DNA of 64,000 bases from Amoebophrya sp. A120 (GCA_905178155.1 CAJINV010000003.1:121282-185281); one strand, 5' to 3'. Shown: positions 15,601 through 54,400, numbered from the stretch's first letter. Program-made: numbers and translations. Notes: generated by a model from the sequence alone, not told the origin.

Positions 15601-18600
15601 ATGAACACACTGAGGGTATATTACAACGCGCACGCAGGAGGAGGCAGAGTGGGCGGCAGAGCAGACGCGTTCTTGTCAGCCTCTCCACGTCTAGCACTGA
15701 AGCTGCTGATCTTTGTGGGAATAACGACTTCTGCTGTGATCTCCCGACGGATTGGCAATAGTCCACAAAACATTCAAGTGCAAAAATCACGACCAGAGGA
15801 CTTTCTGAGGAAAAGTCAGATGGCATCAAGCGCGAGTACCAAACGAGGCTTGTCTACTAGTATCACGCCCAGTGCAGCTACTAGGCGTAACAACTCAACA
15901 TCCTCTTCTCTGTTTTTCACACCTACAAGAACTTCGCACCCTCCTTCAATTGCCAACTCTGGGCCGGTGAATGAAAATATGGAAGCCAAAATGACTGCGG
16001 GTACAGCTGATGCCACGACGAGCAAAATAAATCCGTCGCCTTTTAGTAGTACATCAACCAGCTCCGACGGTGACAGGAGCAGTGTGGGGCAGATTCCGGT
16101 GTACAAGATTTTCGTGGATTACTCCGATGCGGCGAACCTGCACCGCAATCTCGGACGGGCTATCGGGCTCAAGGCGAAGGACATCCTGCAAAGCTGGGCG
16201 CACTCCTGGGCGGAGGAGGTTGGTGGTGGTGGCAAGGAAGATGAGATGGACGCGGAGATGCGCGGGGTGCTGGATATGGATGGACACAATACCGCTGCGG
16301 TACCATCGCGACTTCGCTCATGATCGAAAAAATCTTGCGATCATGAGCGAAAAACAAAGAAAAAAACGGTGATGAATCGCGACGGTGGCGCTCTGTCTGT
16401 GGGTTTTGGTATCACCGCGCGGCCATCAGTGGCACACTTTTAGTTGCTGACAGGCAGCCACCTTTTCGTGGTGAGGCAGGCGTTGCCGCGAAGAAACCAG
16501 CTGCGCAAAGCGGTGGGCCTGCGCTCACCGCGCAGCCTGCGCCCGGGCCTGGGCATCTTCACCATACGTGCTTGGCGACCGTGCCTTGCGCCGACACGCA
16601 GCGCCAAAGAGCCCGCCCTCCATCGCCGAAAGGGGGCGAGACCACTGCCATTTTGCCGTCCCCCCTTTTGCCCGCGCGCCCATACCTGCGCGACGAACAG
16701 TCCGCGCCATGAAATCGGGCTGCCACCGCAGCGGCCCGCCAGGCCGCATCCAGCCAGCGGCAGACCACACACAGGAGCGCAGCGTCCGCCTACCTTTTTC
16801 TGTGCCAGCCTAGTGCCGGCCGCCCGCGCTCGCCACACATAGGCAGCATTCTCGGACGGGGCCGAGGGCGCCGGAGCTGCTGCCGCTGGCCACGCCTGCG
16901 TCTTCGCAGCGGCGTGGGCGTTGCAACGAGCAGCTCCGTGGGGCGTAGGCGGAGCCGGCCCCGCGCCTGCGATGCGGCAATGGGCAGTCTCAATGGGTGT
17001 GCCTGTGGTGGTGGCTTCGCCGGTTCTGGTAGTTAGGTTTGAGATTGGGGGCACAGCGCTTGGGGTTTGCGCCTAGCTTGCGTGGCCGTGTCCCCACCCC
17101 ACCCATGGATGTCTGATTAGTTAGACACAATAGCCAGCCCGCATTGTAATTGTAAATTTTCTGATCTTGTGGGGACGGTCAGGCAGCGCGGGACCTACTC
17201 GCCCGGTGTGCGAAACCATTCCGCGCCATGTGCCTGCCGCCCCCACGGATCTAGCTCGATGACGGTCGCTGTGGCATCGCGATTGCGCGCGTTTCCCAGC
17301 ACTACTGAACGAGCCCACTTTTCGATCATGATCGAACTCGCGATGGTACCGCAACGGAAGAGTGTCCATCCATAGTGCTGGAGCAGGGGGGTGGTGGTGG
17401 CAAGGAGGAGCTTGACGCGGAGATGCGCGGGGTGCTGGAGCAGGTGGGCAGCTAAAAATGTCTGCAGCTAAAAAAATCAAAATTTTGACACACTACGGAG
17501 CGAGGCTGTTGCTTGGGTGTTTGTCATCGTGCGCAATCGTATCGAACGGGCGAAATCTTGACGCCCGACATGCTTGCTGACTCTCTCAGGTTCTTGGGTG
17601 TGTGCCCCCCTGCACCTGTTGCGCGGAGGAACAGGCCGCCAACTCGCATTACACATTGCCGCTTTTTGCGCCCCGTCTTGGGTCAACTTTGTGGCCCGAA
17701 TCACAAATCTGAGCCCCTACATCAGCAGAATGCCGTGCTGTGAGGGTTCAGATTTGTGATGCAAAACGTGGCTTTCCGGAAAACGTCTGCACCTCGGCCA
17801 CTGAGGTCCCAAGTGGAGGTGCAGACGTTTTCCGGAAAGGAGGGGAAAAGTGGGCCTCATAGCCCGTGTTTGTCTGCGTTCCGGAAAACGTCTGCACCTC
17901 CGAAATTGGCCTCCAGATGAGGTGTCCTCGGACACCTTTTCGGAGTCGTCCCGAGTCGCGGACCTCCGGGGCGACAAATTGCGGCCGCCCTTTTCGCACG
18001 GCCCCGAACTGTATCGGGCTCAATTTGCAGGCAAAAGCCTGCAATTTGAGCTCATACCCGAGTCGGCCTCCTCCGAGGCCACTCTTTTTGGACTAAAATT
18101 GCCCCTCGCGCGGGGTCGTCGAGCAAACGACGCAGGAATGGATCGCAGCACCTCGGCCAAGTTCTACAGCACGGAGTCCACGGCGCTCGCAAGCGGGCGG
18201 CAGTCCGGGCGAGAAGAGAAGGACAGAAACCGCACTACCAAAAATTTTGTTTTTTTTTGCTGCAGACATTTTTCCATTTAGTATGGCAAGGAGGAGCTTG
18301 ACGCGGAGATGCGCGGGGTGCTGGAGCAGGTGGTAGGCACTGAACCACTTCGACAAAGTAAAAAAGTTGAGATTGACTTAAGACCCGAGTTGAGATCGAG
18401 TCGAAATTTGCATGATCTGGGCATTCATTAGCAGCGACGTTTCTAGTGCCCAAAATTTCCAGAAGCGTGTATGTGGATAGGATAGCTGTGCGAGGTGCTT
18501 TTGTGCGTCCCCATTGTTGCTTCTGTCCAAAGCGTGAGGATGAGCTCCCTCGTGCTCGACCGGGTGGGCAGTAAATCTGGATCTTGCATATTCAGGGCGA

Positions 18601-21600
18601 GCTTTTTTTCGGGTGAAAAAAGCTGCAATGTTTCCACTCCGTCGAGATCGAATCAAGAGTAAGTTGAGACCGAGTGGACACGGACGGAGTTGAGACCGAG
18701 TTGCGATCGCGCTCGCTGGAATCGAGTTGAGACCGAGTTAAGATCGACTTGAGATCGACTTGACTTCGAGTTGAGATCGAGTTGAGATCGAGCCATCCTC
18801 GAGTTGAGATTTTCACCCTTTTTTCACTGAAAAAAGGAGCAAGCTTTTCTTCAGCTGAAAAATCACGCGGCGCTTTTTTTCAGCTGAAAAAAAGCACACG
18901 AAAAAGTACAAGGGCACAACTTTTCAACTGAAAAAAAGCGCAAGGGCGCAATTTTTCAGCTGAAAAAAAGCGCAAGGGGGTAAGTTTCCAGCTGAAAAAA
19001 GCGCCGTATGAGTTCACACCTCGTTCGATTTTTCAGTGACAAAAAAGTGAAAATCTCAACTCGATCTCAACTCGGTCTCAACTCGGTCTCAGCTCGATGT
19101 CAACTCGATGTCAACTCGATGCCAACTCGATGCCAGCTTGCTCGATCTCAACTAGATCCCAACTCGGTTCCAGCTTGCTCCCTCTCCGCTCGATCTTGGT
19201 TCAATCTCGATGTGTTGCTCATCATCTGCGCACTTCTCGAGTCTCGTCGAGGCTGGAAATTGAGCCATGAATTCGCGCTCGAACAAAGCGTCTTGGCGGT
19301 TTTTTTCAGCTGAAAAAGTGCGCCTTTCCTTTGCGCGCTTTTCAGCTGCAAAAAGCACAGCTAGGGTGCTCGTTCTAGCAGGACCAGGAGTAACTCTGAA
19401 CATTTACACGAACGCCCGCGACACATTTAGCCACAACGCCAGCACTGTTTGAACTCGATCTCAACTGGGTCACTGGGCAATTTCCCGAAAAAGTCTTTGT
19501 CGATGTGGTTCAGTGCCAAAGGAGGAGCTTGGCGCGGAGATGCGCGGGGTGCTGGAGCAGGTGGGCGACACGCAAATGCGCGACATGCGGGCCTGGATCC
19601 GGGCCAGCGAGGAGCACCGCCAGATCTACGAGCAGATCAAGCACGACTCGGTGACGGCCTTTCCCGAGTACCACACGGAGTTGCAGGCCGTGGCGGAGGC
19701 GGCGGAGGTGCCGCTGGAAGACTTGCTGCTGTCGAACCTGTATGCATTGCAAATGTGTCTGGGTCTGGAAGAGTTTGAACTTGTGACGCAAACTCTGGAA
19801 CACACAAAAATTTGTGTTGCATGAGCGCCAAAAGCAGCCTATTTCTTGATACGAAAGTACGGAAGTTTCTCATGCGGGCCAGGCATCAAGAGGCGTGCGC
19901 GTGCTCGAAACTCAAATTTGTGATGCTTTTGCCTGCATCAGACACAATTTGCGTTAGCCGAAATATGCATGACAAATCTCGAAATCTTCCATACCCAGAC
20001 ATATTTGCATTTGATAACCTGCGCGGCGAAATCCTGCAGTACTCCGACCCTATGGACACGACGAAAAAATCTTGCACCGACGTATTCTTTCGGCCTCCAC
20101 CACGACCAGCGAGAACAGCAGGTCAGAGGACCGGCGAAAAAGGGATAATTTTGGCGCAGGCCGATGAATTACCTGTTCGGGATGCCGAACTACAAGGTCG
20201 TTTGCCACGCCCAGCTGTTGCAGAGGTTTCCTCGCCCGGCCCGCTCCAGGCACACAACGACGACTGGGACCGGCCCTGGCAGCACATGAGTTACATATGA
20301 GAGCGCACAACCCCCCCTACCCCTCGTTTGTATGGCATGAACAGCAATACAAGCTTCGGCAAGAGTGCAGGTTTTGCATGACAAAATCGCTTAGGACCGT
20401 ACTGCTGTTTGGGCTGCCAGAACCTGTCATGCAAAAAGTGCTAAGAGGCAAAGGGTGGATTTGGGATTTTTGTGACCCTAGATCTCCTGCGTCCGAAGCT
20501 GCTTGCGGCGACGGTGCAAAGGTTTTTGATGTGGTGCAGTCGGGTATGCATGACAAAAGAGGGGGAGAGGGACTTGTGCACTGTTATACTACTTTGTGGA
20601 GGTGTATGACAGTTCGGACGGCTCCTTTGCGTTCTTCTCCTACTGCTTCCCGGGGTTTTTACCCGGCATGGATTTCTTGGTCAACCGCTTTGGCGTGACC
20701 ATGACGGTGAATTCCCTGTTTCCGGCCCGGTTCGGCGTGCGCGGCGTGGGCACGGCGTTTCTCAGCCGCGCGGTCGTGGACAGCCGCAGTATGGAGGAAG
20801 CGATCCGGGTCATCACGGACACGCGGGCCAGCACCGGCGGCTCCTGGAACGTGGGGCAAATGGCAGTTCGTGGAGGTAGTTTTCGAGCGGATATTAAAAA
20901 TGCAGTGAACAATGATCGTGCTCGTGCACCGGTACAACTGATACCACATCAAGGACAACGAGCGCCCATGCTCGTGAATGTCGAGACGGCAACCGATGGC
21001 GCCTCCCACGTGTTGCATATCTTCAGTGACGACGCCCCATCGGTGGACCCAGTAGTTTCTTCCGCGAGTTCTTCATCTCCACCACCCTCGGACAACATCG
21101 ACGAACCAGGCGGGAGCCGTAGTAGAAGTTCGCCAGAACAATCTTCCTACTACTTTCACGCAAACGAGTATCGACACCTGGACCTGAAGGACAGCGGCGG
21201 TTTTTTCTCCGATCCCTCGACGGAGCACCGCTTGCAGCGGTTCCAGGAGCTCTTTGTTCCTGCTGAAGAAGACGAGGAGGTTGATGTTCAAGACGCGTCC
21301 AAGAAAGCGGAGGACGCGACGAGGTCGTGGACCCAGGGAGCTAGTTCCCCTGCGGCCCGGCTGCTCAATTACCTCGCAGACCAGACGGATCCGGTCTACC
21401 CTGTATTCCGCGAAAATTCTAGCGACAAGGACCCGGTGTGGACTGAGGTGACCGGGCTGTTTAACTTTGAGCAGGGCACCCTGTCTCTTTTTGAGCACTT
21501 GGCGACAAATTTGGACCGAGTTCCTGACTATGTATTCTCGTTTTCTTCATCTAGTACAACCGGGGGAGCAAGAGAAAGAGCAGCGCCCACGACGCCCGGA

Positions 21601-23367: not shown

Positions 23368-26300
23368 ATGCTGAAGACCGTCGGAGGTTTCTTCCTGCTG
23401 CTTGCCGACCAGAGCTCGGAGACCGCGGCCTTGCGCATGCCGATACGACAAAAAAGCATTAGCGTTAGCGTTTTGACATTTGCTGGCGAAAGCCAAACTT
23501 TTTCTAATTCTATTTCTAGCTAGTGAGGTAGCTGTGTTCCGTTCAGACAGATTCGCGCTAACTGGAAGCAGTGGAAGCAGTCTCTTCGGCCGCGGAGCGG
23601 ATCGGAGACGATACCGCCAAAGATGTGGGCGACGGCTCGGCCGCGCACATGTCTGGGGCTTCAGGGACTTCCGGCTACGCGACCTCCTGACCATGCGGGG
23701 GGCTGGCAAACCGTCGCTCTTGGAGTGCCTGAAGACTCGTTTTTGGCTTGCGGCGTTTGAGCCCGAGCAAGATGATCAAGCTGCCCAAAGTCTGGCATTA
23801 GCGTTTCTGTCCTCGGAGGTCATTTCGACCCCCTGAGCAGAGGCGAATTTGAATGGTCCACAAAAAAAACGCTAATACCAAACTTTTTTTTCCAGCTACA
23901 GGTCGTGCCAAAGTTTGGCATTAGCGTTTTTTCCTGGTACTCGAAAAAACGCTAATGCTAAATTTGTTTTTCCAGCATTAGGTGGTGCCAAAGTCTGGCA
24001 TTAGCCTTTATTCCGGGCGCCCAAAAAAAGTGCGGCTTTTGTGCGGTTCGGAAAAAAACGCTAATGGCGGGGTTTGGCACGACCTAACGCTGAAAAAATA
24101 TTTTTGGCATTAGCGTTTTTTTGGGTGGCTGTAAAAAACGCTAATGACAGACTTTGACACGAACTATAGCTGGAAAAAAAATTTCACCATTAGCGTTTTT
24201 TCTGTTGACCACACAAATTTGCATCAGCTGGCCATCAAATCTGTAGATTTTTGATGGCTCGGCCACGAAACGCCAGTAGACACCCAAAAGAAATGCAAAC
24301 CCGCACTACAATCTGCCCCGAACCTGGTCAAATCAGGCAAAAGCCCGGCGACGATGGTGGCAGCCCGATGGCGGGTGGATTTCATCCAGAACGCTTGGGC
24401 ACTGAAGTACGGACCAACGGCGGAGAGGATCTGCAACAAAATGCCGGAGGATACGAAGGGGCGCCGGCTTCCTGTTGCACCGGAGGAGAAGGATACACAC
24501 TTAGCTGACGGATGTTCGTCTGAGCGTGAACTTGCTAACTTAACATGCAAAATCAAAAAAAAAATTCGCTTGTTTGAAAAAATTCGAAAACGCTAACGCT
24601 AATGCTTTTTTGTTCGATGAGGTTTCTTCCTGCTGCTTTCCGAGCAGAGCGCGGAGACCGCTGCCTTGCGCATGCCGATACGACAATGCACAACTCCTCC
24701 CCCTCCCCCTCATTCTATTTTCCATGCCACATGCCTCTTTGTTATTGTTTTATTTCCGGAAAGAACAACCAAAACAGCACTTGCACTTCTAGAATCGGAG
24801 GTCGCCAATAATTTCTAGTGCATATTATTATTAAAGCTGCAGAGAATAATTTATTGCCAGAGCTTGTGATGTTCTTGCTGTGGATGTTCTTGCCATTGAA
24901 ATTTTTAAGGGGAGGAGGAGGTATGTACTCTCATATCCGAACGGCTTCGCCCGCCCGGCCCAGCCGAACGAGTCGAAGTTTCTGCAGGTGCAACACCAGG
25001 TAGATATGGTGCTTGTTTAGGAAAATTGTTTATTTTCAAATGACTCTTACTGTCGCCGCACTACAAAAAGAAAAATTAAAATGATGAACACCCCCACCCC
25101 TGAATGCAAAGTCTGAAATACTTAGTACTTTTGAAATTATGGGTTCTTGGAATTTTTGCGTCAACGTCAAGAAAGAAAGTAGTGCCCACTTGCTTTTGAG
25201 TTAACAGAACGACTGGAAGTTTCTGCAGGTGCATCATCACCCGGTCGTGGCGGAGGAGAACAAGCAGGACGCAGCCAGGGAGAACACCGAGGAAGTGGAA
25301 GACTGCTGCGAGGGCGACCAGGCGGTCCCGTCGATCGACGACTTGCCCGAGGACCCCGAGTCGACCCCTGCGCAAGGAGGTGGAGGTCGCAGCAGACGTT
25401 TCCTGGCGTCGAGCAGCGCCGGCTCGGCGGCTCGCAGCGGTGGTGCTACGGCTCGCAGCGGTGCTACGGCTCGCGGCGGCGCTACGGCCGCCTCCGCGAC
25501 CGCGACCGCTAAGGCGGGTGGGACCACAACTCCGACCGGCACGGTTCCTCCACCTCCGGCTGGGGCGACAACTCCGGCTACGGCTCGCGGCGGTGGGACC
25601 ACAACTCCGACCGGCACGGTTCCTCCACGTCCGGCTGGGACGACGAGCGCCGCGGCGCCTCCGGGCAGCAGCAGCTCCACCCCGCCCACGCCCACGACCG
25701 CACCAGCTGCATCTACTCCGGTCAGCGTTGCCTCTACTCCGACGAGCGCGGCGGGGGCGAAGGGAGGACCGCAGGACCCCGTCAAAGTGGTTTCGCCAGA
25801 GGACAAGGTGGGCGCCGAAGACGAAGAAGAAGAAGACGAACAACCGCCCTGCTGCGGTGGAGAAGCTGAGCAAGACGAGGATGACGAGAAGGCTTCCTCG
25901 GGTGGTGCTGAGCCTGAAGAACCCCTGAAACAACCGGGCGGCTCCGGAGGAGGTGGACTGTCGGCGCCGGGCACTCCTGTCACGCTTCCCGACGGTGCGG
26001 AGGGGCGGACATCAACCCTCCCTTCGATCCCGGGTCCCACGACGTCTGAAGATACCGCTTCTCCTGCGAAGACGACACCTCCGACACCGACGTCCGAACA
26101 AGAGGGCCCGTCCGCTGGCACGACGAAACTGGTGCACATGCACGGACACGTGGACGGGTACGTGCCCGGGGGGGAGGTGCACGGGCACGTGAGCGGGAAC
26201 ATGGAGGTGCAGGGGAAGGTGCCCTCCGGGAGGCTTGCGGTGCACGGGTTCATGCACGTCCCACCCGAAAAATCACGGGACGATGAACACCAACCCGCTG

Positions 26301-38907: not shown

Positions 38908-39262
38908 AATTAAATGTATGACCGGGCAGTAGAAGCCTAGCGAGCCTGTGAGTCTAGGCTGAGGCTGGTCGGTCGGTATTCTATACAGACCCTAGCCCTT
39001 CGGCCATTGGTAGCCAGGACCTGAGAACGTTCCCCCAATTAAGAGACGGCAAGCCATTTCGCTTGTAAGATTTGCCCACCCACCCGCCCTGGTGATGTTC
39101 TCTTGTCAGAGCATAGGTCATGAGGCTTCGAGCCGCTTCGCTTTTCGCGGGGCTGGACAGAGGCCTGCGACGTCTTCGCGTCGGTTGTGGCGGGGTGCCC
39201 CATCGCGGGCGCTCATGCCCTTCCGGTGAAGACGGCTTCCCACTGGAAGCCTACGATCATCC
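38908..39262. repeat. Dispersed ~350-bp TIR-less repeat, copy 1
   Basis: Starts aattaaatgtatgaccgggcag, ends near gatcatcc; similar to 40033-40386; absent from the equivalent position of duplicate unit A (~31275). Confidence 0.7.
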
Positions 39263-40032
39263 AAAGGATGATCTATCTCTGGCTGATTCTGTATAAAATA
39301 AAAGGCTGGCCCGAACAGCACTCGGTCGGTCAGGTTGAAAGACGAAGAGCTTGCTCACTGAAGATAATGCATGATGAATGTATGACGGTCATAAGAATGA
39401 TAAGATAGATATCGACCCGTTCTTACTTTTTCACCCGTGGATCGATGTTGGACCCACGAGGCAAACCTTTGGTGGAGAGGACTACACGGGCGAAGCTTAG
39501 GTGCCCTTTCTTGCATTTCTAGCATAGAAATAATTGCATACTTGTTCTCCGCACCACAAGTTCGCAGCGAAACAGTTTTGTCTTGCGATACGACCAAGGC
39601 GGCCACGCCGCAGTGAGGAGGAATGGCGAGGAGATGGACCAAGGCGGCCACGCCGCAGTGAAGAGGAATGGCGAGGAGATGCAGCTTCAACAAAATTATA
39701 CCTAGAACCACAAATCGCCTTTTGTGTTTTTCGATTTTTGTTGCAAAGCTATACCGCTCACCTTGAGAAGCGCGCGCGTCATTCGATTTTTGTTGCAAAA
39801 TTTTTTACTGGGAAAGTTGGCAAGCGAGCAGAATTTACGTTATGTTTTACTTATTTAATTTTTTTTCTCGATCTTCATCTTACATCTTGCGCGTGACTTT
39901 TTCACTTCATAAAAGAGGCAGTTAGTAGAAGTTTTTGCTATACGTCTTTCATTCACGCTAAGAAGAAACTCATGTCATCAAAACGGTAGAGAAGGTGACG
40001 GCAATGTGTTGCTGCCATTTTTGACTTTCGCT

Positions 40033-40386
40033 AATTAAATGTATGACCGGGCAGCAGCAGGCTCGCGAGCCTGTGAGTCGAGGCTGAGGCTGGGCGGTCG
40101 GTATTTTATACCGACTGAACCCAGTACATATTCCGGTAGCCAGATCCTTGATAGGATGAGGATCAGCGGGGGGCCTTCGGGTTTCACGTTTTTCCCCCAC
40201 CCTCCCTCCCTTTGTTTTATCCTTTCATGCTATTGCCACGGATCGATCATGAGGTCTCGCGCCACTCTTGAGGGAGAGTGTGACAGAGACCCATACGATG
40301 TTTTCGTCCAGACGGGGGCATGGTGCTCCATCGCGGGTACGCCTGCGTTCCGGGCGAAGACGACTCCCATCGAGTCATGATCATCC
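40033..40386. repeat. Dispersed ~350-bp TIR-less repeat, copy 2
   Basis: Same start and end as 38908-39262; empty site in unit A reads ttcgctaactattagagttctgcactg (~31870). Confidence 0.72.
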
Positions 40387-44800: not shown

Positions 44801-47800
44801 ACATACCCCTGCCCTTAGAACGTACAGATACTTATAATATAGATACTAATTTTTCTGACGAACCCGGGGTTGATGAATTGAATGTTTATGTTGCTTCCAC
44901 CTGTTGTCGTGTCTGTTTTTGTAAAATCAAAAAGGTTGATTGACAACTACGCGACCCGGTGTCACCAGCCAGCTGATTTCGTTTTTGAATATAATGAAGT
45001 TTTGGTCGTCGTTGCGGATACAAAATAAACGAAATAATCTTCGCACACCAGCACCGCCGACGCAGCTGCATGAGGGGGACATGGGGGCGATGGGATCCCC
45101 GCTCGATTATCCTGTGCAAAAGCATCGTACTAGTATGAATTGCATATACCAATTGGGTTTGCATTACAAATTGAATTTGTAATGCGGATCTGCCTTAAGA
45201 TGAAAATAAAAATTTGTAATGCATGACTGCAATCACTACGAGTGCGATACTTTTGCAATTCATATCGATGATGACGAAGCAATTCCCCCCGCACCGACGC
45301 AAACCATTATGGCGCGCGCCTTGCAGCTGGAACGAGAGCAGTCCAAGATCCACAAGGAGAAGCCGGCGCCGAGCGCGTGGAAGCTCCAGGAGTTCTACGA
45401 CGAGTGCTCCCTGCCCATCCGGCTGTGGAACCCGAAAATGTTCCACTACAAGCAATATCAAATGCAAAAGTGTCTGGGTCTGGAAGATTGCCAGACTTGT
45501 CATGCATATTTTGCATGGCCCCTGATGGCTGTAGTGCATGGCCTAGCATCACATATTTCTAGAGGGCTTCCTGTTGCCTATTCTCCATGAGAAATGCAGT
45601 CTCCGTGTAGACCAAACTGGACTCCTCTTTCTGGTCATGCAATACAGATTTTTTTCGAGTCCGAAGACAGCATGACAAGTTGCAATCTTCCAGACCCAGA
45701 CATTTTTACGATCCATAAGCAAGGGAAAATACACGAACTCATCCTAGACTACGCCGCCAGCCGAAACGGGAAAGTCGGAAAGGTACGTAGATAGAAGTTG
45801 TTTATTGGATAATACTGCAGCGGCTGGTCGACGATGATCTTTGCACTCCAGCGAAGTAGGTGTTCAGAGCTGCTTCTAGTGGTTGTAGAGGCTGCTTATA
45901 CTCAATAACATAAACCTATGGCAGTGGGAAAAAAAAACTTTTTTTTTTTGCTACATATGGATCACCCATCGTGGTTAGGAGATAGCTTGTTGGCGGCGAG
46001 AATCGATTGCGTAGCGACAGCGTCTGCCACGGTATTCTGAGCTCGGTAGTCTGAAGGCAAGAAGATGGCCGCATTGGTGGCGCACTGCGTCACGGCTTTG
46101 GGTCCGTCATGGCCGGCGTAGATGTCGAACAGCCAGCCCCTGCAGTGCTGCCGGTTTAATGACAGCAATGCGCGGCCAGCCCAAAGCCAGAGGTGCTGCG
46201 CGCTGGAGCAAACAATAGGCCCACGCCCCAACAGGCGAAACAGGCGCCCGCGCGTGGCCTTTGATTAATTCAAAGCCATGCGCGGTCTTGCCGATGACAT
46301 TGATGCCACGGCCATGGCGCTCTTCCGGCCCTAGGTCTCCGGTGGCGTTTCTTCGCCCTGGCTGTTTTGCACGGAGGCCAGCAGAGTTCCCTCCTGGGCT
46401 GCAAACCGAAATCCTCTTGGGGTGCCCCCGAGGGGTCCCCCAAACCCCCCCTCCTTTGGGGCCCTTTCCGAAAGCTACTCCCCATTGATATCTCCACGAA
46501 AGGGGGTCCCCCAAACCCCCCCCCCTCAAGGGGGGGCCCGGCCCCGCTTTTGTTTCGTTTGCGCAAGTTCGCATATTTCCATAAAATAGTTCTTGAACAG
46601 CCACTAGGCGACTCCGGCCAAAACGGAGACTTGCACAGCCTTGCCGGGAATAAATTCAAGGGCGCCGAAGGTGTCAGCCTATCCTGTATTTGCCGTGTGG
46701 GGCGCTCCCAAAGCTAGGGTGGGCCATGTCTCGAGGCCGTGCGCGTCTCAGCCTGCCGCCTCTAAGCGAACCAGTGAGAATGTCGCTGACTTATCCCGAA
46801 GCCCCTGCCCATACACCAAAGTTCAGAGCTGCTTCTAGTGGTTGTAGAGGCTGCTTATACTCAATAGTGTTGGAAGGGGCTGGCTAAATGCTAGCGTTGC
46901 GACCCGACAAGCCTGCGGTGCGCCATACAGCAAAATACTGCCCGTGAGGGTATGAGGTGTGAGTGGAGTGCTTTACTTTTCCGCTGAATTATCAGCCCGC
47001 CAAAAATCTTCCCTGTGATCATTGATTCTTGCCGGAGTGATAATTCACTGAATTATGTGCACTCCACTTCCTGCTTGTCAACGGGAAATGGAGTGCTAAT
47101 GCATTACGTTGCCACTTCGTGGGTGACTTTTGCCATGCCGGAGTGATAACTCAGTGACTTACCGCTCCATATTCCCCGTTGCCCAACCACCGACCATCCA
47201 CGGGAAATGAGCGGGCAATGCCCTGAGTTATCTGCGTTGCCAGACGCGTTGCCGGAGCCGGACGAGGCCTATCGGCCAGCGGGAAAGCAGTTATCTGAAA
47301 GATTGGGCATCAGATCCCACTCGCCACTCTTCATTCGGCCGGCCGGCCGGGTGAGGAGTGGGACGGATCAGCTATCCGCAGCTCTGGGCCAAAAGCCGGC
47401 TCGAGAAACTCGAGATCGGTGCGGCGACCTGAAAAAAGCGGATCCGTCCCACGTTTCACCCACCCGCCCGGGCAGATGAAATCCCACTCTTCCGGATAAT
47501 TTGTTACCCCACTCACGAACTAGCTCGCAGAATTATCACCCAAGCAAAAGCCACACCGTGAAAGTAGGATTTTATTTTCCAAAAGTGGCAACACAACGGA
47601 ATGCCGCCACGAAGCTCCACACACTCACACTTTTCGCGGAGTGGCATTCCAAGTGATTCGCACTCCTCGGGAGGTCAGAGTGTGGGCGCATGCATGCGAG
47701 GTGGGAGCGCGGCGGGCCGGGCACAATACCACCGGCACGCTGCGCGCCAGAGCTCGCGGAAGGCGCTGGCACAGGAAAGGCCGCGCCGCTTCGGCGGCCT

Positions 47801-50208
47801 TCGCTTTGCCCTCCTGCCCGAAGTCAAAAGGGGCTCAGGCGGCTCTTTCGTTCTCTTTTTGGGCCCCGTTCGCCCTGTTCCCCATCTGGACCAATTTCTT
47901 GTGTTCAGCCATATCTACTAGGGGTCCCGAGTCATGCAGGGGCTTTATATTCCAGCGCATGGAAGAGGAAAAGAGCAATGCGTCCTTTACCTCTATGCGC
48001 AACCTGCACTGGTAGCGGCTCCATCGAGTTCGATGCTGAGAAGACGAGAGCGAGGGTTTTGCGCCGGGTAGGCTTTTCTTCTGGCACAACCAAAAGCCCC
48101 CTAGGAAGCAACAAAGAGGAGACTGCCAACCTCTAGAGGTGCAGAATCTCCTTTGGGGTCTCCTTTCGACACTTTTAGGTCGTATATCGCACATCGCAAA
48201 AAAGGAGACGGCCGACCTCTAGTGGTGCGGAGCCTCCTTGGCCGTCTCCTTTCAAGCATTTTAGGTCGTGGATCGCGAGCCAAAGCGCGAACCCCTCTAG
48301 AGGTCAGTAACCTCCTCGGTCGTCTCGTCTTGAGAATAGCACCGCGAACAGCTTCAAAAGACGAATCCGAAAAAGCCCGACCTTAAAGGTCGAAGCCTCC
48401 TCCGTGGTCTCCTTGATGTCTCCTTTTCGTCAGAAACTAACGCGGAGTGGGCATTTTAGGAAAAAGGCCAAAAAAGTGCCTACCTCTAGAGGTTTTAGTC
48501 TCCTTTTGGTCTCCTTGGAAGACTGTAGCGGCTGTAGTTGGCTCGTGAAAGCCTTTTTTTTTGAGCTCCATAGGTTTTGGTCTCCTTGCTCCACTAGTTT
48601 TGGTCAAGTTGCTGCTAGTCTATAGTTCTCTATGGTAGTTCAGAGCTGCTTCTAGTGGTTGTAGGCTGCTTATACTCAATAACATAAACCTACTTATGTT
48701 TAATACTACTTTACGGTGGTGAAGAAGATCTTCGATGGGCACGAGTTGCCAGATTCGTGGCTGGAGGCAGCAATAGCTTTGCTGCATAAGAATGGACCAA
48801 GGGCGGAGCCGCAGAACTATCGGCCGGTCGCCTTGCTCCATGTTGGCGAAAAAGTAGTAAGCTTAATAGTGTTAAACCGGGTGCGGGAAAGCGCCTACAA
48901 AATCATAGACAAAAGGCAGAAAGGCTCAGTAAGGGGCCTCAGTTGCAGACATGCGGTCTTTCGCTTGCTTCGGGACATGGAGCACGCGATCAAAGCGGGG
49001 GAGCAGCGGGTCTGTGATTTCATCGACTTCCAGAAGGCCTATGACTCCTTGGACTGGCAGAAGATGACCAAGATTTTGGGGTGGCAGGGGTTTCCTGTGG
49101 AGCTGGTGGAAGTCGTGCGGCGAATGTATGGCTCCGCCACATTCGCGTTGAAGGTCGGGCCGGGGAAACTAAGCAAAGCAACCACGCGGCAAAAAGCGGG
49201 CATCAGGCAGGGCTCTAGCCTGAGCCCACTGGTTTTTGTGCTAATTTTGGACTTTGCAATGCAGGCCTTCGAGCTTGCAATGCATGAAGAAGAGGCTTGG
49301 GTAGGAAGCAAGGATACCCCCAGCTTCCTATCCTGGTTGGGGTTCGTGGATGACTTGGTAGTCCGAAGCGACTCGCCGGAAGAAGCACAGGCAGCGCTGC
49401 TGCAGCTCCAGGCAGCCTGTAGGTTCGCGGGGCTCGAGTTGAACGCAAAGAAAACCGAGGCCATGACCATAGGCCTGCAGCCAACCAAGAAGGACAGCAG
49501 CGACGCAAAAAAGGAACGCTTCACCACAGAAGAAGGAACCGCGAACGAACGCAGCGGCTGGGCAGTCGAGTGGGACGGGGTGGACCTTGTGGAGGAATTT
49601 GCAGCTGCGGCCAGATCCAGGAAGCCCATCGCGCCGGCGATGGAGAAGACCACGCATCTTCTTCTTTGGGACGATGGGAAATACAGTAGATGTTGGATGA
49701 AGAAGACAGGGTGGACAATCACGGACGCGGGGGAGCGAATGCGAATAGTGGTTGTCAGAGCTGCTTCCAGTGGTTGTAGGCTGCTTATACTCAATAGCAT
49801 AAGCCTACTTATGTTTAATACTACTTTTACGCGGTTGCTGTAGCTGCTGACATACATTACAATATGTCGTGAATGTGGAAGCGGTACTAGCTTGAAATTG
49901 AATATTCATCGAACAAGAAAAATAAATCCCTTCAGATCGGGATGCAGGCTGCGAAGCCAGCCGAGGGTGCGGAAGAGGAGGCCGTAGAAGATCCGGGCAC
50001 GGTGGTTGGACTCGACATCAAAGGCGGCGTTGTGGATGAGAAGACGTTCTACCATCTGGAATTCTGTGTCGTCGTGGAGCAGCCCGTGGTTGTGCGTTTC
50101 GAGGAAACTCGGGTCAGTGACATTCGCACACAGCTGGCCGAGCGCTTCTCAGAGCATCTGCCCTTGCACCGCGTTGGCGTCATTTGCTGCACAATGAAAA
50201 AGGAATAA
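41804..50208 (+). CDS. MORN-repeat-containing protein, multi-exon
   Basis: MAEEEAPPEPE...LFYGEVK...YVAHGKG...GDYAENEMSGDGTIEYYDGSVYKGELVQGTFEGEGTYTWPNNSFY (MORN repeats); five introners; phase-0 GT-AG intron 45783-49935 joins KVGK to IGMQAAK. Some internal junctions unresolved. Confidence 0.75.
41818..42042. mobile_element. Introner family C
   Basis: tataacagtgcacaactccccctc...gagggggatttgtgcactctcata; DR gagga/gagga. Confidence 0.9.
42096..42370. mobile_element. Introner family A
   Basis: DR acgtc/gcgtc; removal gives FETS|SGQLF. Confidence 0.88.
42431..42678. mobile_element. Introner family A
   Basis: Near-perfect ~30-bp TIR; DR cgacg/cgacg; removal gives PEAT|EESAT. Confidence 0.92.
45108..45264. 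mobile_element. Introner family D
   Basis: DR tcgat/tcgat; removal gives SPLD|DDEAI. Confidence 0.9.
45456..45717. mobile_element. Introner family A
   Basis: DR agcaa/agcaa; removal gives HYKQ|GKIHE. Confidence 0.9.
45862..49831. repeat. Repeat-cargo array: four copies of a 46-78 bp host sequence separated by three unrelated 0.9-1.8 kb inserts, inside an intron
   Basis: gttcagagctgcttctagtggttgtag(ag)gctgcttatactcaata... at 45862-45918, 46821-46866, 48638-48715, 49755-49831. Confidence 0.92.
48716..49754 (+). pseudogene. Non-LTR (LINE-type) reverse transcriptase fragment, truncated at both ends
   Basis: NYRPVALL, FIDFQKAYDSL, GIRQGSSLSPLVF, GFVDDL, GLELNAKKT motifs; open frame spans exactly the interval between two repeat copies; no ATG or stop of its own. 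Confidence 0.9.
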
Positions 50209-51447
50209 ATTTAAATTTATTTTTATAGCTACTTAGCAGGAGACTTCTAGACACTGAACTTCGCGTTTTGCAGCTGCAGCTGCGCCGTTTACTTTAAGTT
50301 GATGTTGATATTATTGCAGGGGTCGAGTTCATCAATTTCGATAGCCCCCCGATCTATCATCACGAGGACTAAGTATAAGACGAGCACTTCAAACGAAAAG
50401 TAGTTTTAAATTGAACCGAATCCGATAGGGATGAATAAAATCAAATATTGTAGTTGATCTGAGCCCAGGATTTTGGGTGACGAGTAGGAGTAGCAACTAG
50501 CAGATGACCACGTGTTTTTGTGTATCAGGGAAGTACAGCGAACAGCAACAGATTTGAGTTAGCGCTTCCAGGAGGACGACGACAAGCAGGGCAGTATGAC
50601 AGCTTTGCATCACGAAATGAAAATATCTGAGAGTGTGGCGCTTGCCTTCGCAACAGTCGGCTGTGGACCACGACTGATAGACCAATCATTAGTAGGAAAA
50701 CATCTTCAAGCCCCGTGTTCAGCTTTATCCAGGTGCTTACTATACTCGCGGCCATCGAATTGTATTTGTATTCGTGGAACTGAAGGAGCCCCTGAGTACT
50801 AGAAGTTGCAGTTCTTTGCGAGTTTCCTAGTAAGCATTGATAAAGATGATGATCCTTATTTTATCTGCAGTGATATTAAGCGTGGACCAGCGAGCTGCAA
50901 CAAAGATCAGATGAAAACAGTTCCCACGATAGATTTCAATCTTTACGCCATGTGTGTTTTACTTTTCTCCAGGCGGTCTAGTGATATTAAGACCAACTCG
51001 ATGGGTAGAAAGATTTTGAGGACCGAAGCGTCTTTACAACTTCTGGATTTCCAAGAAACGCTCTTTTAATGTCCGCGTCGCGCAGCAGCAGCAAGAAGAA
51101 GATCCGCCTTTGTGAAATTGTTAACCACCACGAGGACCTTTTTCTCTTCGCCCTCGCTTGCTAGTACTTATTTAAGTAAGTACACTGGCCATCCATACTA
51201 CCAATGGGACTACTTTTTACAAACTACATGAACCGCAGCAGCGAGCCCTGAAGAAGATCGTATTCCTCTTCTTCCGATCTACGAGAAGTGCAGCTGCACC
51301 TCGAATAAGTACGTGTTTTTTGATAGGCCGAAAAATATTTTATTTTAGTACCGAAGCGAAAATACTACTAGAGCAAAAAGTTTTTGATACAAGTACTTTC
51401 ATTTTGAAACGACCGTCAAAATTGGGCGCGTGGAGACGACCACCACC

Positions 51448-54400
51448 ATGTATCACACCCGACCTGGGCAAGCCGGCGCGCCAATGGGCGGCTACGGCGG
51501 GATGCAGCAACAGCAGGGCATGGGCCTCGGTCCGGGGGTGCAGCAACACCAGGAGCCGGACTACACGGTGAAAAACGACGCTTCGGAGTTCGAGAAAGAA
51601 AACGACTTCGTGCAATTTTTCAAGTACATCCAGGGACACCACTCTTGCACCCACAGTTCCATGATCGGGCCCTCCGATCACCGCATTCTACCAAATGTAA
51701 AAATGTCTGGGTCTGGAAGATTAGAACTTGTCATGCTAAATCTGAATGATGCAAAAATCTGTGTTGCGTGAGTACCAAAACCTATCCGCTTTTGACCAAG
51801 TCGAGAGGGAGTTTCCCATGCAGGAGAGGCATGATAGAGACATCAAAGAATCTGTCATGCTGGGTCTCGCATTCCAGACCTCATGCGTCACGGAAAACCT
51901 GCATCAGAAGTCTTTCATTCTTCCAGACCCAGACATTTTTGCATTTGATACATTCCCCGCAGTGGCAAATTCGACGTCACCAAAAAGGACGCACTGGAAA
52001 AACTGTATATTTTTTTTTCTTCGAAATAAACCGATGTCTATAAAAAAAAAATCCAATAGAAATTCTCCAACGCCCCAATAGAGATTCTCCGTATAGAGAA
52101 TCTCCCGCGTCGAATCTATCGGCTCCCGCTTTGTCTTCGGTTGCGTCTGCTCTTCGCCTTCGCCTGGCGCAAAGAAAAGCTGTTGGCCTTCCTCTGGCGC
52201 AAAAGGCCGCTCTCGCTTGACTTTTTCAAAGTGCTCTTTTTGTTCCGTGCCCATGGACGGGGAAAAAAGTTCCTGTGCATGTTTCGGCCTCCGGGGGTTC
52301 AGCTTTTTCATTCTTTATTTGCCCGCCGTCAGTTGCGGGGAAAGAAAGAATAACTTCGCACCGACCTGGCGGCCGGCGTAGGGGAAATAGAGAATATTGC
52401 GCACACTGTGCGCGCGCGGGCTTCTTTTTGAGCGGCCAGACGTTCTTGCTCGCCGATGCGCGGCATCTGGCGGCGTGGCGGAAATGAAAATAATTTCTGC
52501 GCGCTGCGCCGCGGGGGCTTTTTCTTGTGAGCAGCCGGGCGCCTCTTTTCGCCGGCCCGCGCACCACATCAATCTTGTGGCGTGCTGGGATCGAAAAATA
52601 AATATGCGCGCCGCTGCCAGCGCGCCGCGCTTTGTAGCGATGCGGGATCGAATTCAAAATCCGACTCGCCCACGCGCCGCGTGTTGTGGCGGTGTGGTTC
52701 GACTTCCAAAAAATTTCGCGCGCTGTGCGCGCGCGAATTTTTCTCTCTGGGCGGCCGCGCACCCCCGTCGCCCGCGCGGCGCGCCTGGTGGCGATGGATG
52801 CGGAATCGAATGCGAAAAGTTTTTGCGCTTCTTTTTCCTTGGCCGGTCGCGTATTTTCGTCGCCCGCGTTTCGCGCTTGGTGGTCGGCACCCACAGTTCC
52901 ATGATCGGGCCCTCCGATCACCGCATTCCCCGCAGTGGTAAATTCGACGTTACCAAGAAGGACGCACTGGAAAAACTGTAATTTTTTTTCATCTTTGTAA
53001 CATATAAACCGATGTTGATGAGTTCTTCGACGGTGAAGACATCAAAGATTCCTTGCTGTAAAAATCATGTGCTAATGACACAGAAGCTGAGTCAGTGAGT
53101 AGTTTTTCTATAAGGATAAGGAAAATTGAAATAATGAATCGCGAATATAAAATCGTATCCTCTCTCTACCTATAAAGGTATGCCGCTGTGTCTTTCTTCC
53201 ACCGCCAGGGAAAGCCGCTGGTGCTGTGCGAGATTGCGACCAGCCGGTTCCGCTTTTTCGAGGACGTAGATCTGCTCCTCCCAGCCGAACTGAAGGACCA
53301 GCTGCCCCAGTTACAAGACCAGTGGGTGCACCACTTGCTGCGGCACAGGGGCGCAGTCCTGGGGGCCGTCTGGCGAAGCGAGGACCCGCTCGGTATTTTT
53401 ATACTAGGATCTTCCGATGATGATCTACAGTTCTTGCTATAAGATCATATCGTGCACTACGTATTCGTATGAGCCGAATTTCTATGTTCTACAAAAATCC
53501 TTATCCAGGTGTCAAGTGCCGTTCCGAGACTGCCACCGTGCACGTGTTTTCTTCCTCCGGGTGGAGTTCCCGTCACAATCAGCCGAAAATCTCCTTGCAC
53601 TTCGTCTGGCCCGACTTGATCTGCACGCCGCGGGAAGCCAAGGGAATCCGCAGTGCCACCATCGAGTTCCTGCGGGAATCCTGTTCGGAGGAACTGTCAA
53701 CGTTACTGGAAAAGTGCTACGAAAAGAACCCGCTGCAACAGGACTTAGTCGATATGTCACCCTGGGAAGAAATCTTTGACAAGGCCGCCACCGAGGGAAC
53801 CAGTTTGCGGTATTGATAGAAATTGATGATCTATAGAAAGAAAAATGTTTGTCACAGTCATTAACTTGGAGACTTAGAATTGCAAATTTTTTTAGCATCG
53901 CAGCTTTTCCTTGTATTGCAGAAACACTAGGGGAAACCCCCTACAAAGATTGGCTGTGATGCATTTTTACGCATGGCAGGCATTTTTTGTATTGCAGAAA
54001 TGCCCATGAGTGATCGCGACGAACTTTTTTTCTTTGATATGATCCCACGACGAACAGCTGCAAACAAAAACAATAGAAAAGTATGCAGCCTCCCTTGTAG
54101 TTTTTACGTGCTTCCGTTATTATGTCTTGGGGATTGTCTAACCTGTCCCCATGATCTGACTTCATCATCATTCACACACAATGAAATAACAGATTGGTCT
54201 TCTGTGACAAGGGTGCGAAGGCGGACCTCGAGAAGAAGATGGCCGCACGATTAGAGGGGCGTCCCAAAGTCCCAGTAGGCACTTACCAGGTAAAAAGCTC
54301 ATCATGTGCCAACAACAAACAACATTGGATGTGGCGAAAATTGTACATTGCATAGATTGATAAGTACGTCGTAGTAGATGATACAGAGTACAGGACGGTG

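Follow-up and report, generated by a model that had tools for sequence, protein, structure and literature searches.

The DNA analysed here, called the window throughout, is a stretch of 64,000 nucleotides (nt) from Amoebophrya sp. A120, a dinoflagellate of the Syndiniales that parasitises other dinoflagellates (CAJINV010000003.1:121282-185281). It contains a host gene in which two exons are separated by a single GT-AG intron of 4,153 nt. Entirely inside this intron lies an array in which four copies of one host segment (R1 to R4) alternate with three inserted modules of 902, 1771 and 1037 nt, made up of four cargo units of 844-1037 nt. At one nucleotide, the intron took up four pieces of DNA of transposon type, with 46-78 host bases duplicated each time. 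The features of the locus, in window coordinates, are the following:

45594..45782, plus strand: upstream exon of the host gene, an open reading frame (ORF) segment with the end ...GKVGK (ORF list, RNA contig)
45783..49935, plus strand: single GT-AG intron of 4,153 nt, with the array entirely inside it (RNA contig, sequence)
45862..45918, plus strand: host copy R1, 57 nt, GTAGAGG variant, continuous with the upstream part of the intron (sequence, unique in the genome)
45919..46820, plus strand: insert 1, a right-truncated member of a TAT...ATA inverted-repeat transposon family (genome matches of 73-90%, family ends)
46821..46866, plus strand: host copy R2, 46 nt, matching R1 at every position (sequence comparison)
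46867..47710, plus strand: insert 2a (A), a discrete unit of 844 bp (genome search)
47711..48637, plus strand: insert 2b (B), an element of 927 bp with internal repeats of ~85 bp (family copies L026, L027, L028, L032)
48638..48715, plus strand: host copy R3, 78 nt, GTAGG variant (sequence comparison)
48716..49752, plus strand: insert 3, an internal fragment of a long interspersed nuclear element (LINE) ORF with RVT_1, in sense orientation (Pfam, nucleotide identity)
49753..49831, plus strand: host copy R4, complete, continuing into the remaining intron (sequence comparison)
49936..50208, plus strand: downstream exon of the host gene, to the stop codon (ORF list, RNA contig)

An earlier reading of this DNA from its sequence, referred to below as the initial annotation, had described four host copies alternating with three mutually unrelated inserts, and the coordinates it gave were confirmed; short-read contigs bear out, at single-copy depth, the junctions that they cross. 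The three inserts are present, with the amendment that insert 2 consists of two units (A, 46867-47710, and B, 47711-48637), and the resulting transposon, A, B and LINE sequences are indeed unrelated to one another. All host copies begin at the same base—with GTTCAGAGC in the window sequence, reading TGTCAGAGC in R4, where the first two bases are swapped—and end after 57 nt in R1, 46 nt in R2 and 78 nt in R3. The repeated use of one point and a duplication with one fixed and one variable boundary, both part of the earlier description, are thereby borne out. R1 and R2 carry GTAGAGG and R3 and R4 carry GTAGG; the most diverged copy is R4, with three transitions and one extra T in addition to the swapped bases. 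The terminal TA of R1 is shared with the TATGGCA terminus of insert 1 (an overlap or microhomology), and GGT is common to two right junctions of the array. Searching the whole A120 assembly (115.5 Mb in 401 contigs) returned the host segment at these four places only. It is therefore unique host DNA, and not the terminus of a transposon or other multicopy element, the possibility that the initial annotation had itself raised against its proposal. Without the inserts and the additional copies, the intron would be an ordinary one of about 260 nt, likewise in line with that annotation.

Read support for the array was drawn from four public runs compared with 45400-50400, all in the form of short-read contigs, with no long reads. 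The DNA of one run (X1) probably comes from the source culture, making it independent of the assembler but not of the strain. X1 contigs cover the block at about 43x: one contig of 3,081 nt on 48608-50400 crosses B, R3, insert 3, R4 and the adjoining host sequence, and other contigs each cross the junctions host-R1, R1-insert 1 and insert 1-R2. Contigs over insert 1 read at unique depth (36-40x), as do those over B and insert 3. A contig from a second study, presumed to be RNA (X3), connects 45782 with 49936 and omits 4,153 nt bordered by GT..AG, the start of the joint being placeable at 45780 or two places rightward and its end at 49934/49936, owing to alignment ambiguity. The whole array is thus removed as one spliced intron, 45783-49935. 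That the repeats were joined chimerically during assembly is hardly conceivable. Such an artefact could find room at the R2-A junction, which in this assembly of Nanopore and Illumina reads (PMC7789003) is known from the continuous depth of short reads alone, yet it would have to account for the unique-depth contigs over host-R1, R1-insert 1, insert 1-R2 and B-R3-insert 3-R4-host, for flanking exons joined in RNA, and for the occurrence of the same design at many loci.

Just upstream of the array, a TAT...ATA hairpin element (45455-45709; arms 45466-45491 and 45682-45707) is also skipped by the X3 contig, with a joint from 45449 to 45717 and a 6-nt ambiguity. It is an ordinary introner with non-GT-AG ends.

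Every insert of the array either belongs to a dispersed repeat family or has a second genomic copy. The cargos are hence not the anonymous captured fragments for which they had been taken, but transposon, retroposon and LINE sequences, with the LINE piece as the only coding content. A whole-genome search with insert 1 returned about a dozen relatives at 73-90% identity, and the aligned relatives give an element of ~1,167 bp with terminal inverted repeats of ~50 bp, TATGGCAGTGGGAAA...TTTCCCATTGCCATA. Insert 1 retains an intact left terminus whose inverted repeat has lost 13 nt internally; its right end, about 250 bp short of the family terminus, adjoins R2. With a single terminus and no 5-bp duplication, this copy is not a canonical introner-type insertion of the kind found in the inverted-repeat families at L021 (duplication CAGTG), L052 (GGAAA), L053 (GTCGG) and L056 (TTCGG; L numbers designate loci fetched from the assembly).

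Insert 2 consists of two discrete elements, A and B, that follow each other directly, without an intervening host copy. A has one other genomic copy, 95% identical and with the same two ends, which lies inside the host-repeat array L038. B belongs to a family whose right (3') end is constant, ...AGTCTATAGTTCTCTATGGTA, or as alternatively written ...AGTCTATAGTTCTCT(A/T)(T)GGGTA, and here adjoins R3. The family also comprises L026, with a 47-bp flank repeat, L028, L032 and L027, the last consisting of the final 67 nt only. This combination of a fixed 3' end with 5' truncation is retroposon-like. Within B, 48113-48340 and 48483-48610 hold about five tandem units of ~80-86 nt, each with a CCTCTAGAGG palindrome. 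Two motifs near its 3' end, CCATAGGTTTTGGTCTCC and CCACTAGTTTTGGTCAAG, may resemble the dinoflagellate spliced-leader sequence.

Insert 3 contains an open reading frame with a Pfam RVT_1 match (E=4e-26) and is 76% identical at the nucleotide level to a LINE ORF of 1,003 amino acids on contig C18, against which about 780 nt are missing on its upstream side and about 1.2 kb on its downstream side. Among solved structures, human L1 ORF2p comes closest to the C18 ORF. A LINE endonuclease domain was not identified in the copy examined, no search having been aimed upstream of the C18 ORF, and no target duplication was found around the C18 copy itself. A, B and insert 3 have no inverted repeats, and an Rfam scan of the block at a permissive threshold gave chance-level matches only, while a tRNA scan gave none.

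The design of the array recurs across the genome. The sample surveyed—the 64-kb window plus the flanks of transposon-family matches—is small and biased towards transposon loci; in it, flank repeats of 30-130 bp around inserts of ~1 kb are common, amounting to seven stacked arrays (the present one, window 17398-19564, L018, L022, L038, L054 and L055) and about eleven single flank-repeat cases. Members of the insert-1 family have flank repeats of 30-100 bp at 10 of 11 readable loci, the other being the plain 5-bp duplication at L021. A second inverted-repeat family (window 23452-24618) has canonical copies with 5-bp duplications (GGAAA, GTCGG, TTCGG), and its members also occur inside arrays, with four host copies at L054, three at L055 and four at L018. 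The L018 array further holds a 954-nt element with terminal inverted repeats (L018a; L018:251-1204, G000 C4:5246659-5247612), flanked by identical 57-nt host copies. This element is single-copy in the whole assembly, with neither a donor nor a relative. At four loci (L013, L017, L054 and L055; G000 C5:1689k, C9:3332k, C4:4635k and C3:107k), one empty and one filled host copy stand in tandem: a complete inverted-repeat element, its 5-bp duplication intact, is situated 3-13 nt away from the point where the short host duplication is joined, and these junctions show 2-7 nt of microhomology. Such empty-plus-filled duplications look like the product of a local DNA template switch beside a hairpin-forming element.

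Several further observations concern repeats within the window. The array at 17398-19564 has three 50-nt host copies, split by inverted-repeat elements of 836 and 1181 nt; its first two host copies are identical and the third has altered first bases. At 51647-53015, a host duplication of about 125-130 nt surrounds an 849-nt right-truncated member of a repeat family; the first 42 nt of the duplication are identical and the remainder is 88% identical, and a 262-nt introner is present in the upstream copy and absent from the downstream one. In all copies of the family at window 52038 and L046-L050, the left junction consists of a run of 9-12 T, about 17-20 variable bases and ATGT, after which the element starts with CTA(T/G)AAAAAAAAAATCC; a flank of this recurring kind points to a strict preference for the target or else to a hypervariable stretch belonging to the element. 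Two candidate target duplications were discarded. In the 83-nt direct-repeat pair 38908/40033 (38908-40115), the first repeat makes up, with the next 312 nt, a multicopy unit recurring at 98% identity on C7, C10, C4, C14 and others, partly in local clusters, and a weak repeat at 16233 reflects the similarity of coding repeats on either side of an ordinary introner.

The insert-1 family has the same polarity in three arrays (window, L018 and L022), with its right end at the fixed boundary and its intact left end at the variable one. The right end is truncated by 250 nt in the window, 8 nt in L018 and about 14 nt in L022. The L018 array is a mirror image of that in the window, and the insert-1-family element is inverted there too. 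In the window array, the fixed boundary is also faced by the 3' end of B and by the 3' side of the LINE fragment. This polarity fits nick-primed copying with the fixed point as the first nick. It is not general: at L018, a second-family member has its complete end at the fixed side and its truncated end at the variable side, and in two host-segment copies at L054, the same nucleotide is the point to which two different elements attach through complete ends.

With respect to the order of events, R1 holds host bases 47-57, which R2 lacks, implying that insert 1 arrived before insert 2; 'newest at the left', in the form initially assumed, therefore fails. Under the order insert 1, insert 2, insert 3, one change suffices to explain the AG indel. 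The identity of R1 and R2, the near-identity of R3 and the difference of about 7% in R4 suggest the R3/R4 duplication to be the oldest. Past the precedence of insert 1 over insert 2, the evidence on the order is thus in conflict. In other arrays, the identical copy pair is found at either end; at L018, two host copies match at 57/57 positions and the third is 86% identical. Ten flank-repeat pairs, about 446 nt in total, contain 0 differences. Gene conversion between flank repeats was considered and set aside as unlikely for repeats of 46-78 nt, other pairs being 6-14% diverged.

Target-primed reverse transcription begins with a nick at a specified position, whereas that of the second nick is loose. 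Our tentatively favoured reading, one that we would put short of even odds, is that the array arose by serial nick-primed copying of this LINE type at one reusable nick with a long, variable stagger. The bottom strand would be nicked at the start of the host segment, that is, at the fixed point, and the free 3' end would prime the copying of a LINE mRNA, of B, of A or of a transcript of the inverted-repeat transposon. Copying would often begin within the template, and a template jump of the polymerase could join A directly to B. The new strand would then be connected upstream where the top strand had opened, 46-78 nt downstream of the nick, and the stretch between the two cuts would be duplicated. 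The long duplication would recreate the nick site, leaving it reusable, and each new cargo would stack beside the older ones. An RNA intermediate, with LINE reverse transcriptase and endonuclease as the enzyme, is what we infer for this process.

Several features argue for serial nick-primed copying. The host copies have a common start and variable ends, and the flanking duplications vary in length, from 46 to 78 nt here and from 30 to 130 nt at other loci. Both cargos of knowable RNA polarity, B and insert 3, have their 3' side toward the fixed point, and the insert-1 family has one polarity relative to that point in the window, L018 and L022. The A-B junction lacks a host copy, as in a template jump of reverse transcriptase; the far junctions of L013 and L017 carry 13 and 8 extra nt, respectively, in which the target is re-copied across the nick; and L1-like LINE ORFs exist in the genome. 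The B family has a constant 3' end, one of its copies being reduced to the last 67 nt. LINEs are also known for target duplications of 126 bp and more, and the arrays and single cases recur genome-wide.

Other observations weigh against this reading. On the side where priming is supposed, inserts 1 and 3 are without their own 3' ends; the starting points of copying would need to have lain about 250 nt and about 1.2 kb, respectively, inside the templates, and no poly(A) tail was seen on the cargos. Most cargos of the other arrays are inverted-repeat DNA transposons, from families that also show canonical 5-bp duplications, and the empty and filled copies at L013, L017, L054 and L055 resemble local DNA rearrangement rather than arrival by way of RNA. 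Flanks are identical in ten events, yet the cargo either has no genomic relative or differs by 4-15% from the closest one: no match to insert 1 exceeds 90%, L018a is single-copy, and insert 1, B and insert 3 read at unique depth. Copy-and-paste should leave a near-identical donor, and none was found in the assembly for insert 1, B, insert 3 or L018a; nor was any case of intron loss found. The absence of donors would not be expected to trouble cut-and-paste, the capture of excised DNA, or a history in which donors were lost. Hypermutation of the cargo was rejected as a reason for the missing donors, the transition:transversion ratio within the family being ordinary (about 1.1-2). Finally, the fixed points of different loci share no motif, though each is reused to the nucleotide. 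TGATG occurs at several boundaries, on differing sides and strands, and was not relied on. None of the models considered accounts well for three of these features: the empty-plus-filled duplications, the reuse of the same nucleotide without a common motif, and the pairing of identical flanks with cargo that lacks a close donor.

A serious rival, which we regard as possible though on balance unlikely, is capture during break repair. Where the host segment begins, a break or nick would recur, and linear extrachromosomal transposon DNA would be joined into it, namely excised inverted-repeat elements, some with nibbled ends, together with pieces of LINE or retroposon complementary DNA (cDNA); the broken end would be extended by 46-78 nt on the sister chromatid, duplicating the flank, and serial ligation would give A+B. 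Insertions templated or captured at break sites are made of transposon and cDNA fragments, can comprise several in a row and show microhomology, as does the present array with its TA overlap and its A and B in a row. Such insertions are not normally known to come with a long direct target duplication or to recur at one nucleotide; the array has both the long duplication and exact reuse of the site. Capture would account for cargo ends that are complete, truncated or furnished with a few extra bases, at either end, including the L015 insert, which is bordered on each side by 4-5 nt foreign to its target. It would also sit well with the microhomology at R1/insert 1 (TA), in L014 (GCGGC) and at the tandem-duplication junctions (2-7 nt), with tandem duplications that adjoin hairpin-forming elements, and with the lack of a remaining donor for insert 1 and L018a, as expected of excised elements that moved. 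Ordinary end-joining capture, however, does not produce target duplications of 30-130 bp, and the same nucleotide would have to break repeatedly over evolutionary time with no visible cause. Capture likewise leaves to coincidence that B and the LINE piece are both oriented as nick-primed copying predicts (chance once in four) and that the insert-1 family has one polarity in 3/3 arrays.

Two further accounts have less to recommend them. By-products of the TAT...ATA transposase are an unlikely source: here, one end would be integrated at a preferred target, through half-site or uncoupled integration or alternative transposition between sister chromatids, with the other side closed by host repair, strand-displacement synthesis yielding the long flank duplications and the target preference of the transposase the reuse of the site. 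Most array cargos are inverted-repeat elements with complete termini, the same families have canonical 5-bp duplications, the two elements of L054 meet the same host nucleotide with complete ends in two host copies, and 7/8 events of the insert-1 family combine one precise with one imprecise junction. In the window array, though, insert 1 alone is of this type, with its truncated and not its intact end at the fixed point; inverted repeats are absent from A, B and the LINE fragment; and the published A120 annotation reports no transposase (PMC7789003). A single complex event seems quite improbable. A replicative or reverse-transcriptive strand that switched templates many times, returning after each cargo to the same end, nick or 5' end of a local RNA, would have built the whole array at once, giving identical copy starts without a site-specific enzyme, left ends of insert 1 and A that are complete as after run-off at a template 5' end, and A directly joined to B. 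It predicts equal ages, and the copies are unevenly diverged: R1 equals R2, R3 differs by one indel and R4 by 5-6 changes, which has a chance of roughly 0.01 if all are of the same age, and the L018 copies match at 57/57 positions versus 86%. This unevenness argues against a single birth of each array.

The initial annotation had likened the array to Cas1 adaptation at clustered regularly interspaced short palindromic repeats (CRISPR). The likeness is one of geometry, the repeat being duplicated per acquisition and one boundary fixed, and we consider a dedicated CRISPR-like or casposase-like system storing fragments at the repeat very improbable. Cas1-Cas2 adaptation and casposons are prokaryotic and Cas1-dependent, with a fixed repeat length and spacers of about 30-40 bp; in the array, the repeats measure 57, 46 and 78 nt plus the full copy, and the transposon-derived cargos about 0.85-1 kb. 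A six-frame search of the whole 115.5-Mb assembly for Cas1 (PF01867) gave 0 matches, with the caveat that genes are heavily intron-split; of 14 named control genomes, 7 were above the cut-off in the same search. Moreover, the design is repeated at numerous unrelated loci that each have a host sequence of their own, and the block leaves the transcript by plain intron splicing.

Taken across the genome, the design looks like an undescribed mode of DNA insertion rather than a CRISPR-like one. A more general proposal, which we hold to be doubtful, is that in Amoebophrya, and perhaps in the wider Syndiniales, a persistent strand-specific end serves as a reusable entry for the DNA or cDNA of any mobile element. 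Candidates for this end are a nick that recurs and the 5' terminus of a local RNA on which repair is templated; each entry would duplicate 30-130 bp of target, the entry point would survive and cargos would pile up, and the resulting repeat-cargo arrays could be spliced out as introns. The fallback offered by the initial annotation, an undescribed fragment capture or a recurrent break-repair signature, may still hold and comes near our overall conclusion.

Among known systems, LINEs provide the nearest parallel for the length of the duplications. PMC9977147 cites target duplications of 126 bp for R9 of bdelloid rotifers and longer ones for Dualen of Chlamydomonas; eukaryotic LINEs thus already offer examples of the long variable duplications for which the initial annotation had pointed to bacterial IS1634/IS1549-type elements. 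Those bacterial elements encode a transposase and have inverted repeats of their own; the host here is a eukaryote, and its cargos are mutually unrelated and, the LINE piece apart, non-coding. R9 and Dualen owe their long flanking duplications to two distant cuts in target-primed reverse transcription; the array resembles them in having LINE sequence among its cargos and a retro-type cargo with its 3' side at the specified cut. It differs in that events at one site gave duplications of unequal length, most of the cargos are something other than the LINE itself, 3' ends are often lacking, the same nucleotide is reused and arrays build up, and the LINE present is nearest to L1 ORF2, not R2-type or Dualen. 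The 'retro-DNAs' of primates, described in PMC11195612 as DNA-transposon sequences mobilised by LINE machinery, are likewise inverted-repeat transposon sequences with duplications far exceeding those of their own transposase; the A120 elements differ in that they often keep both exact termini, have no A-tails and are stacked at one point. The hairpin introner introns of Amoebophrya (PMC7789003; PMC12130899) come from the same organism and the same element type as insert 1, with TAT...ATA ends, inverted repeats and, in canonical copies, 5-bp direct repeats, one such element (45455-45709) being spliced out just upstream of the array. The direct repeats given in these papers measure 3-5 nt, as opposed to 30-130 bp here, and term searches of the two texts turned up no mention of 30-130-bp flank repeats or stacked arrays. 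In the literature searched, the combination of stacking at one nucleotide, mixed cargo and missing donors has no counterpart.

Amoebophrya is a key case for bulk intron gain, for which published accounts describe small hairpin elements with 3-5-nt repeats. The array shows a second route: the recurrent, polar entry of kilobase-sized mobile DNA into genes, with duplications of 30-130 bp and the same nucleotide revisited, by which an intron has grown from about 260 nt to 4.15 kb and is still correctly removed. If a reverse transcriptase is used, LINE activity, transposon transcripts and intron growth would be linked; if a repair pathway is at work, staggered breaks would be mended in an unusual manner in a lineage whose chromatin is very odd. 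In both cases, the return to exactly one nucleotide poses a concrete, testable puzzle.

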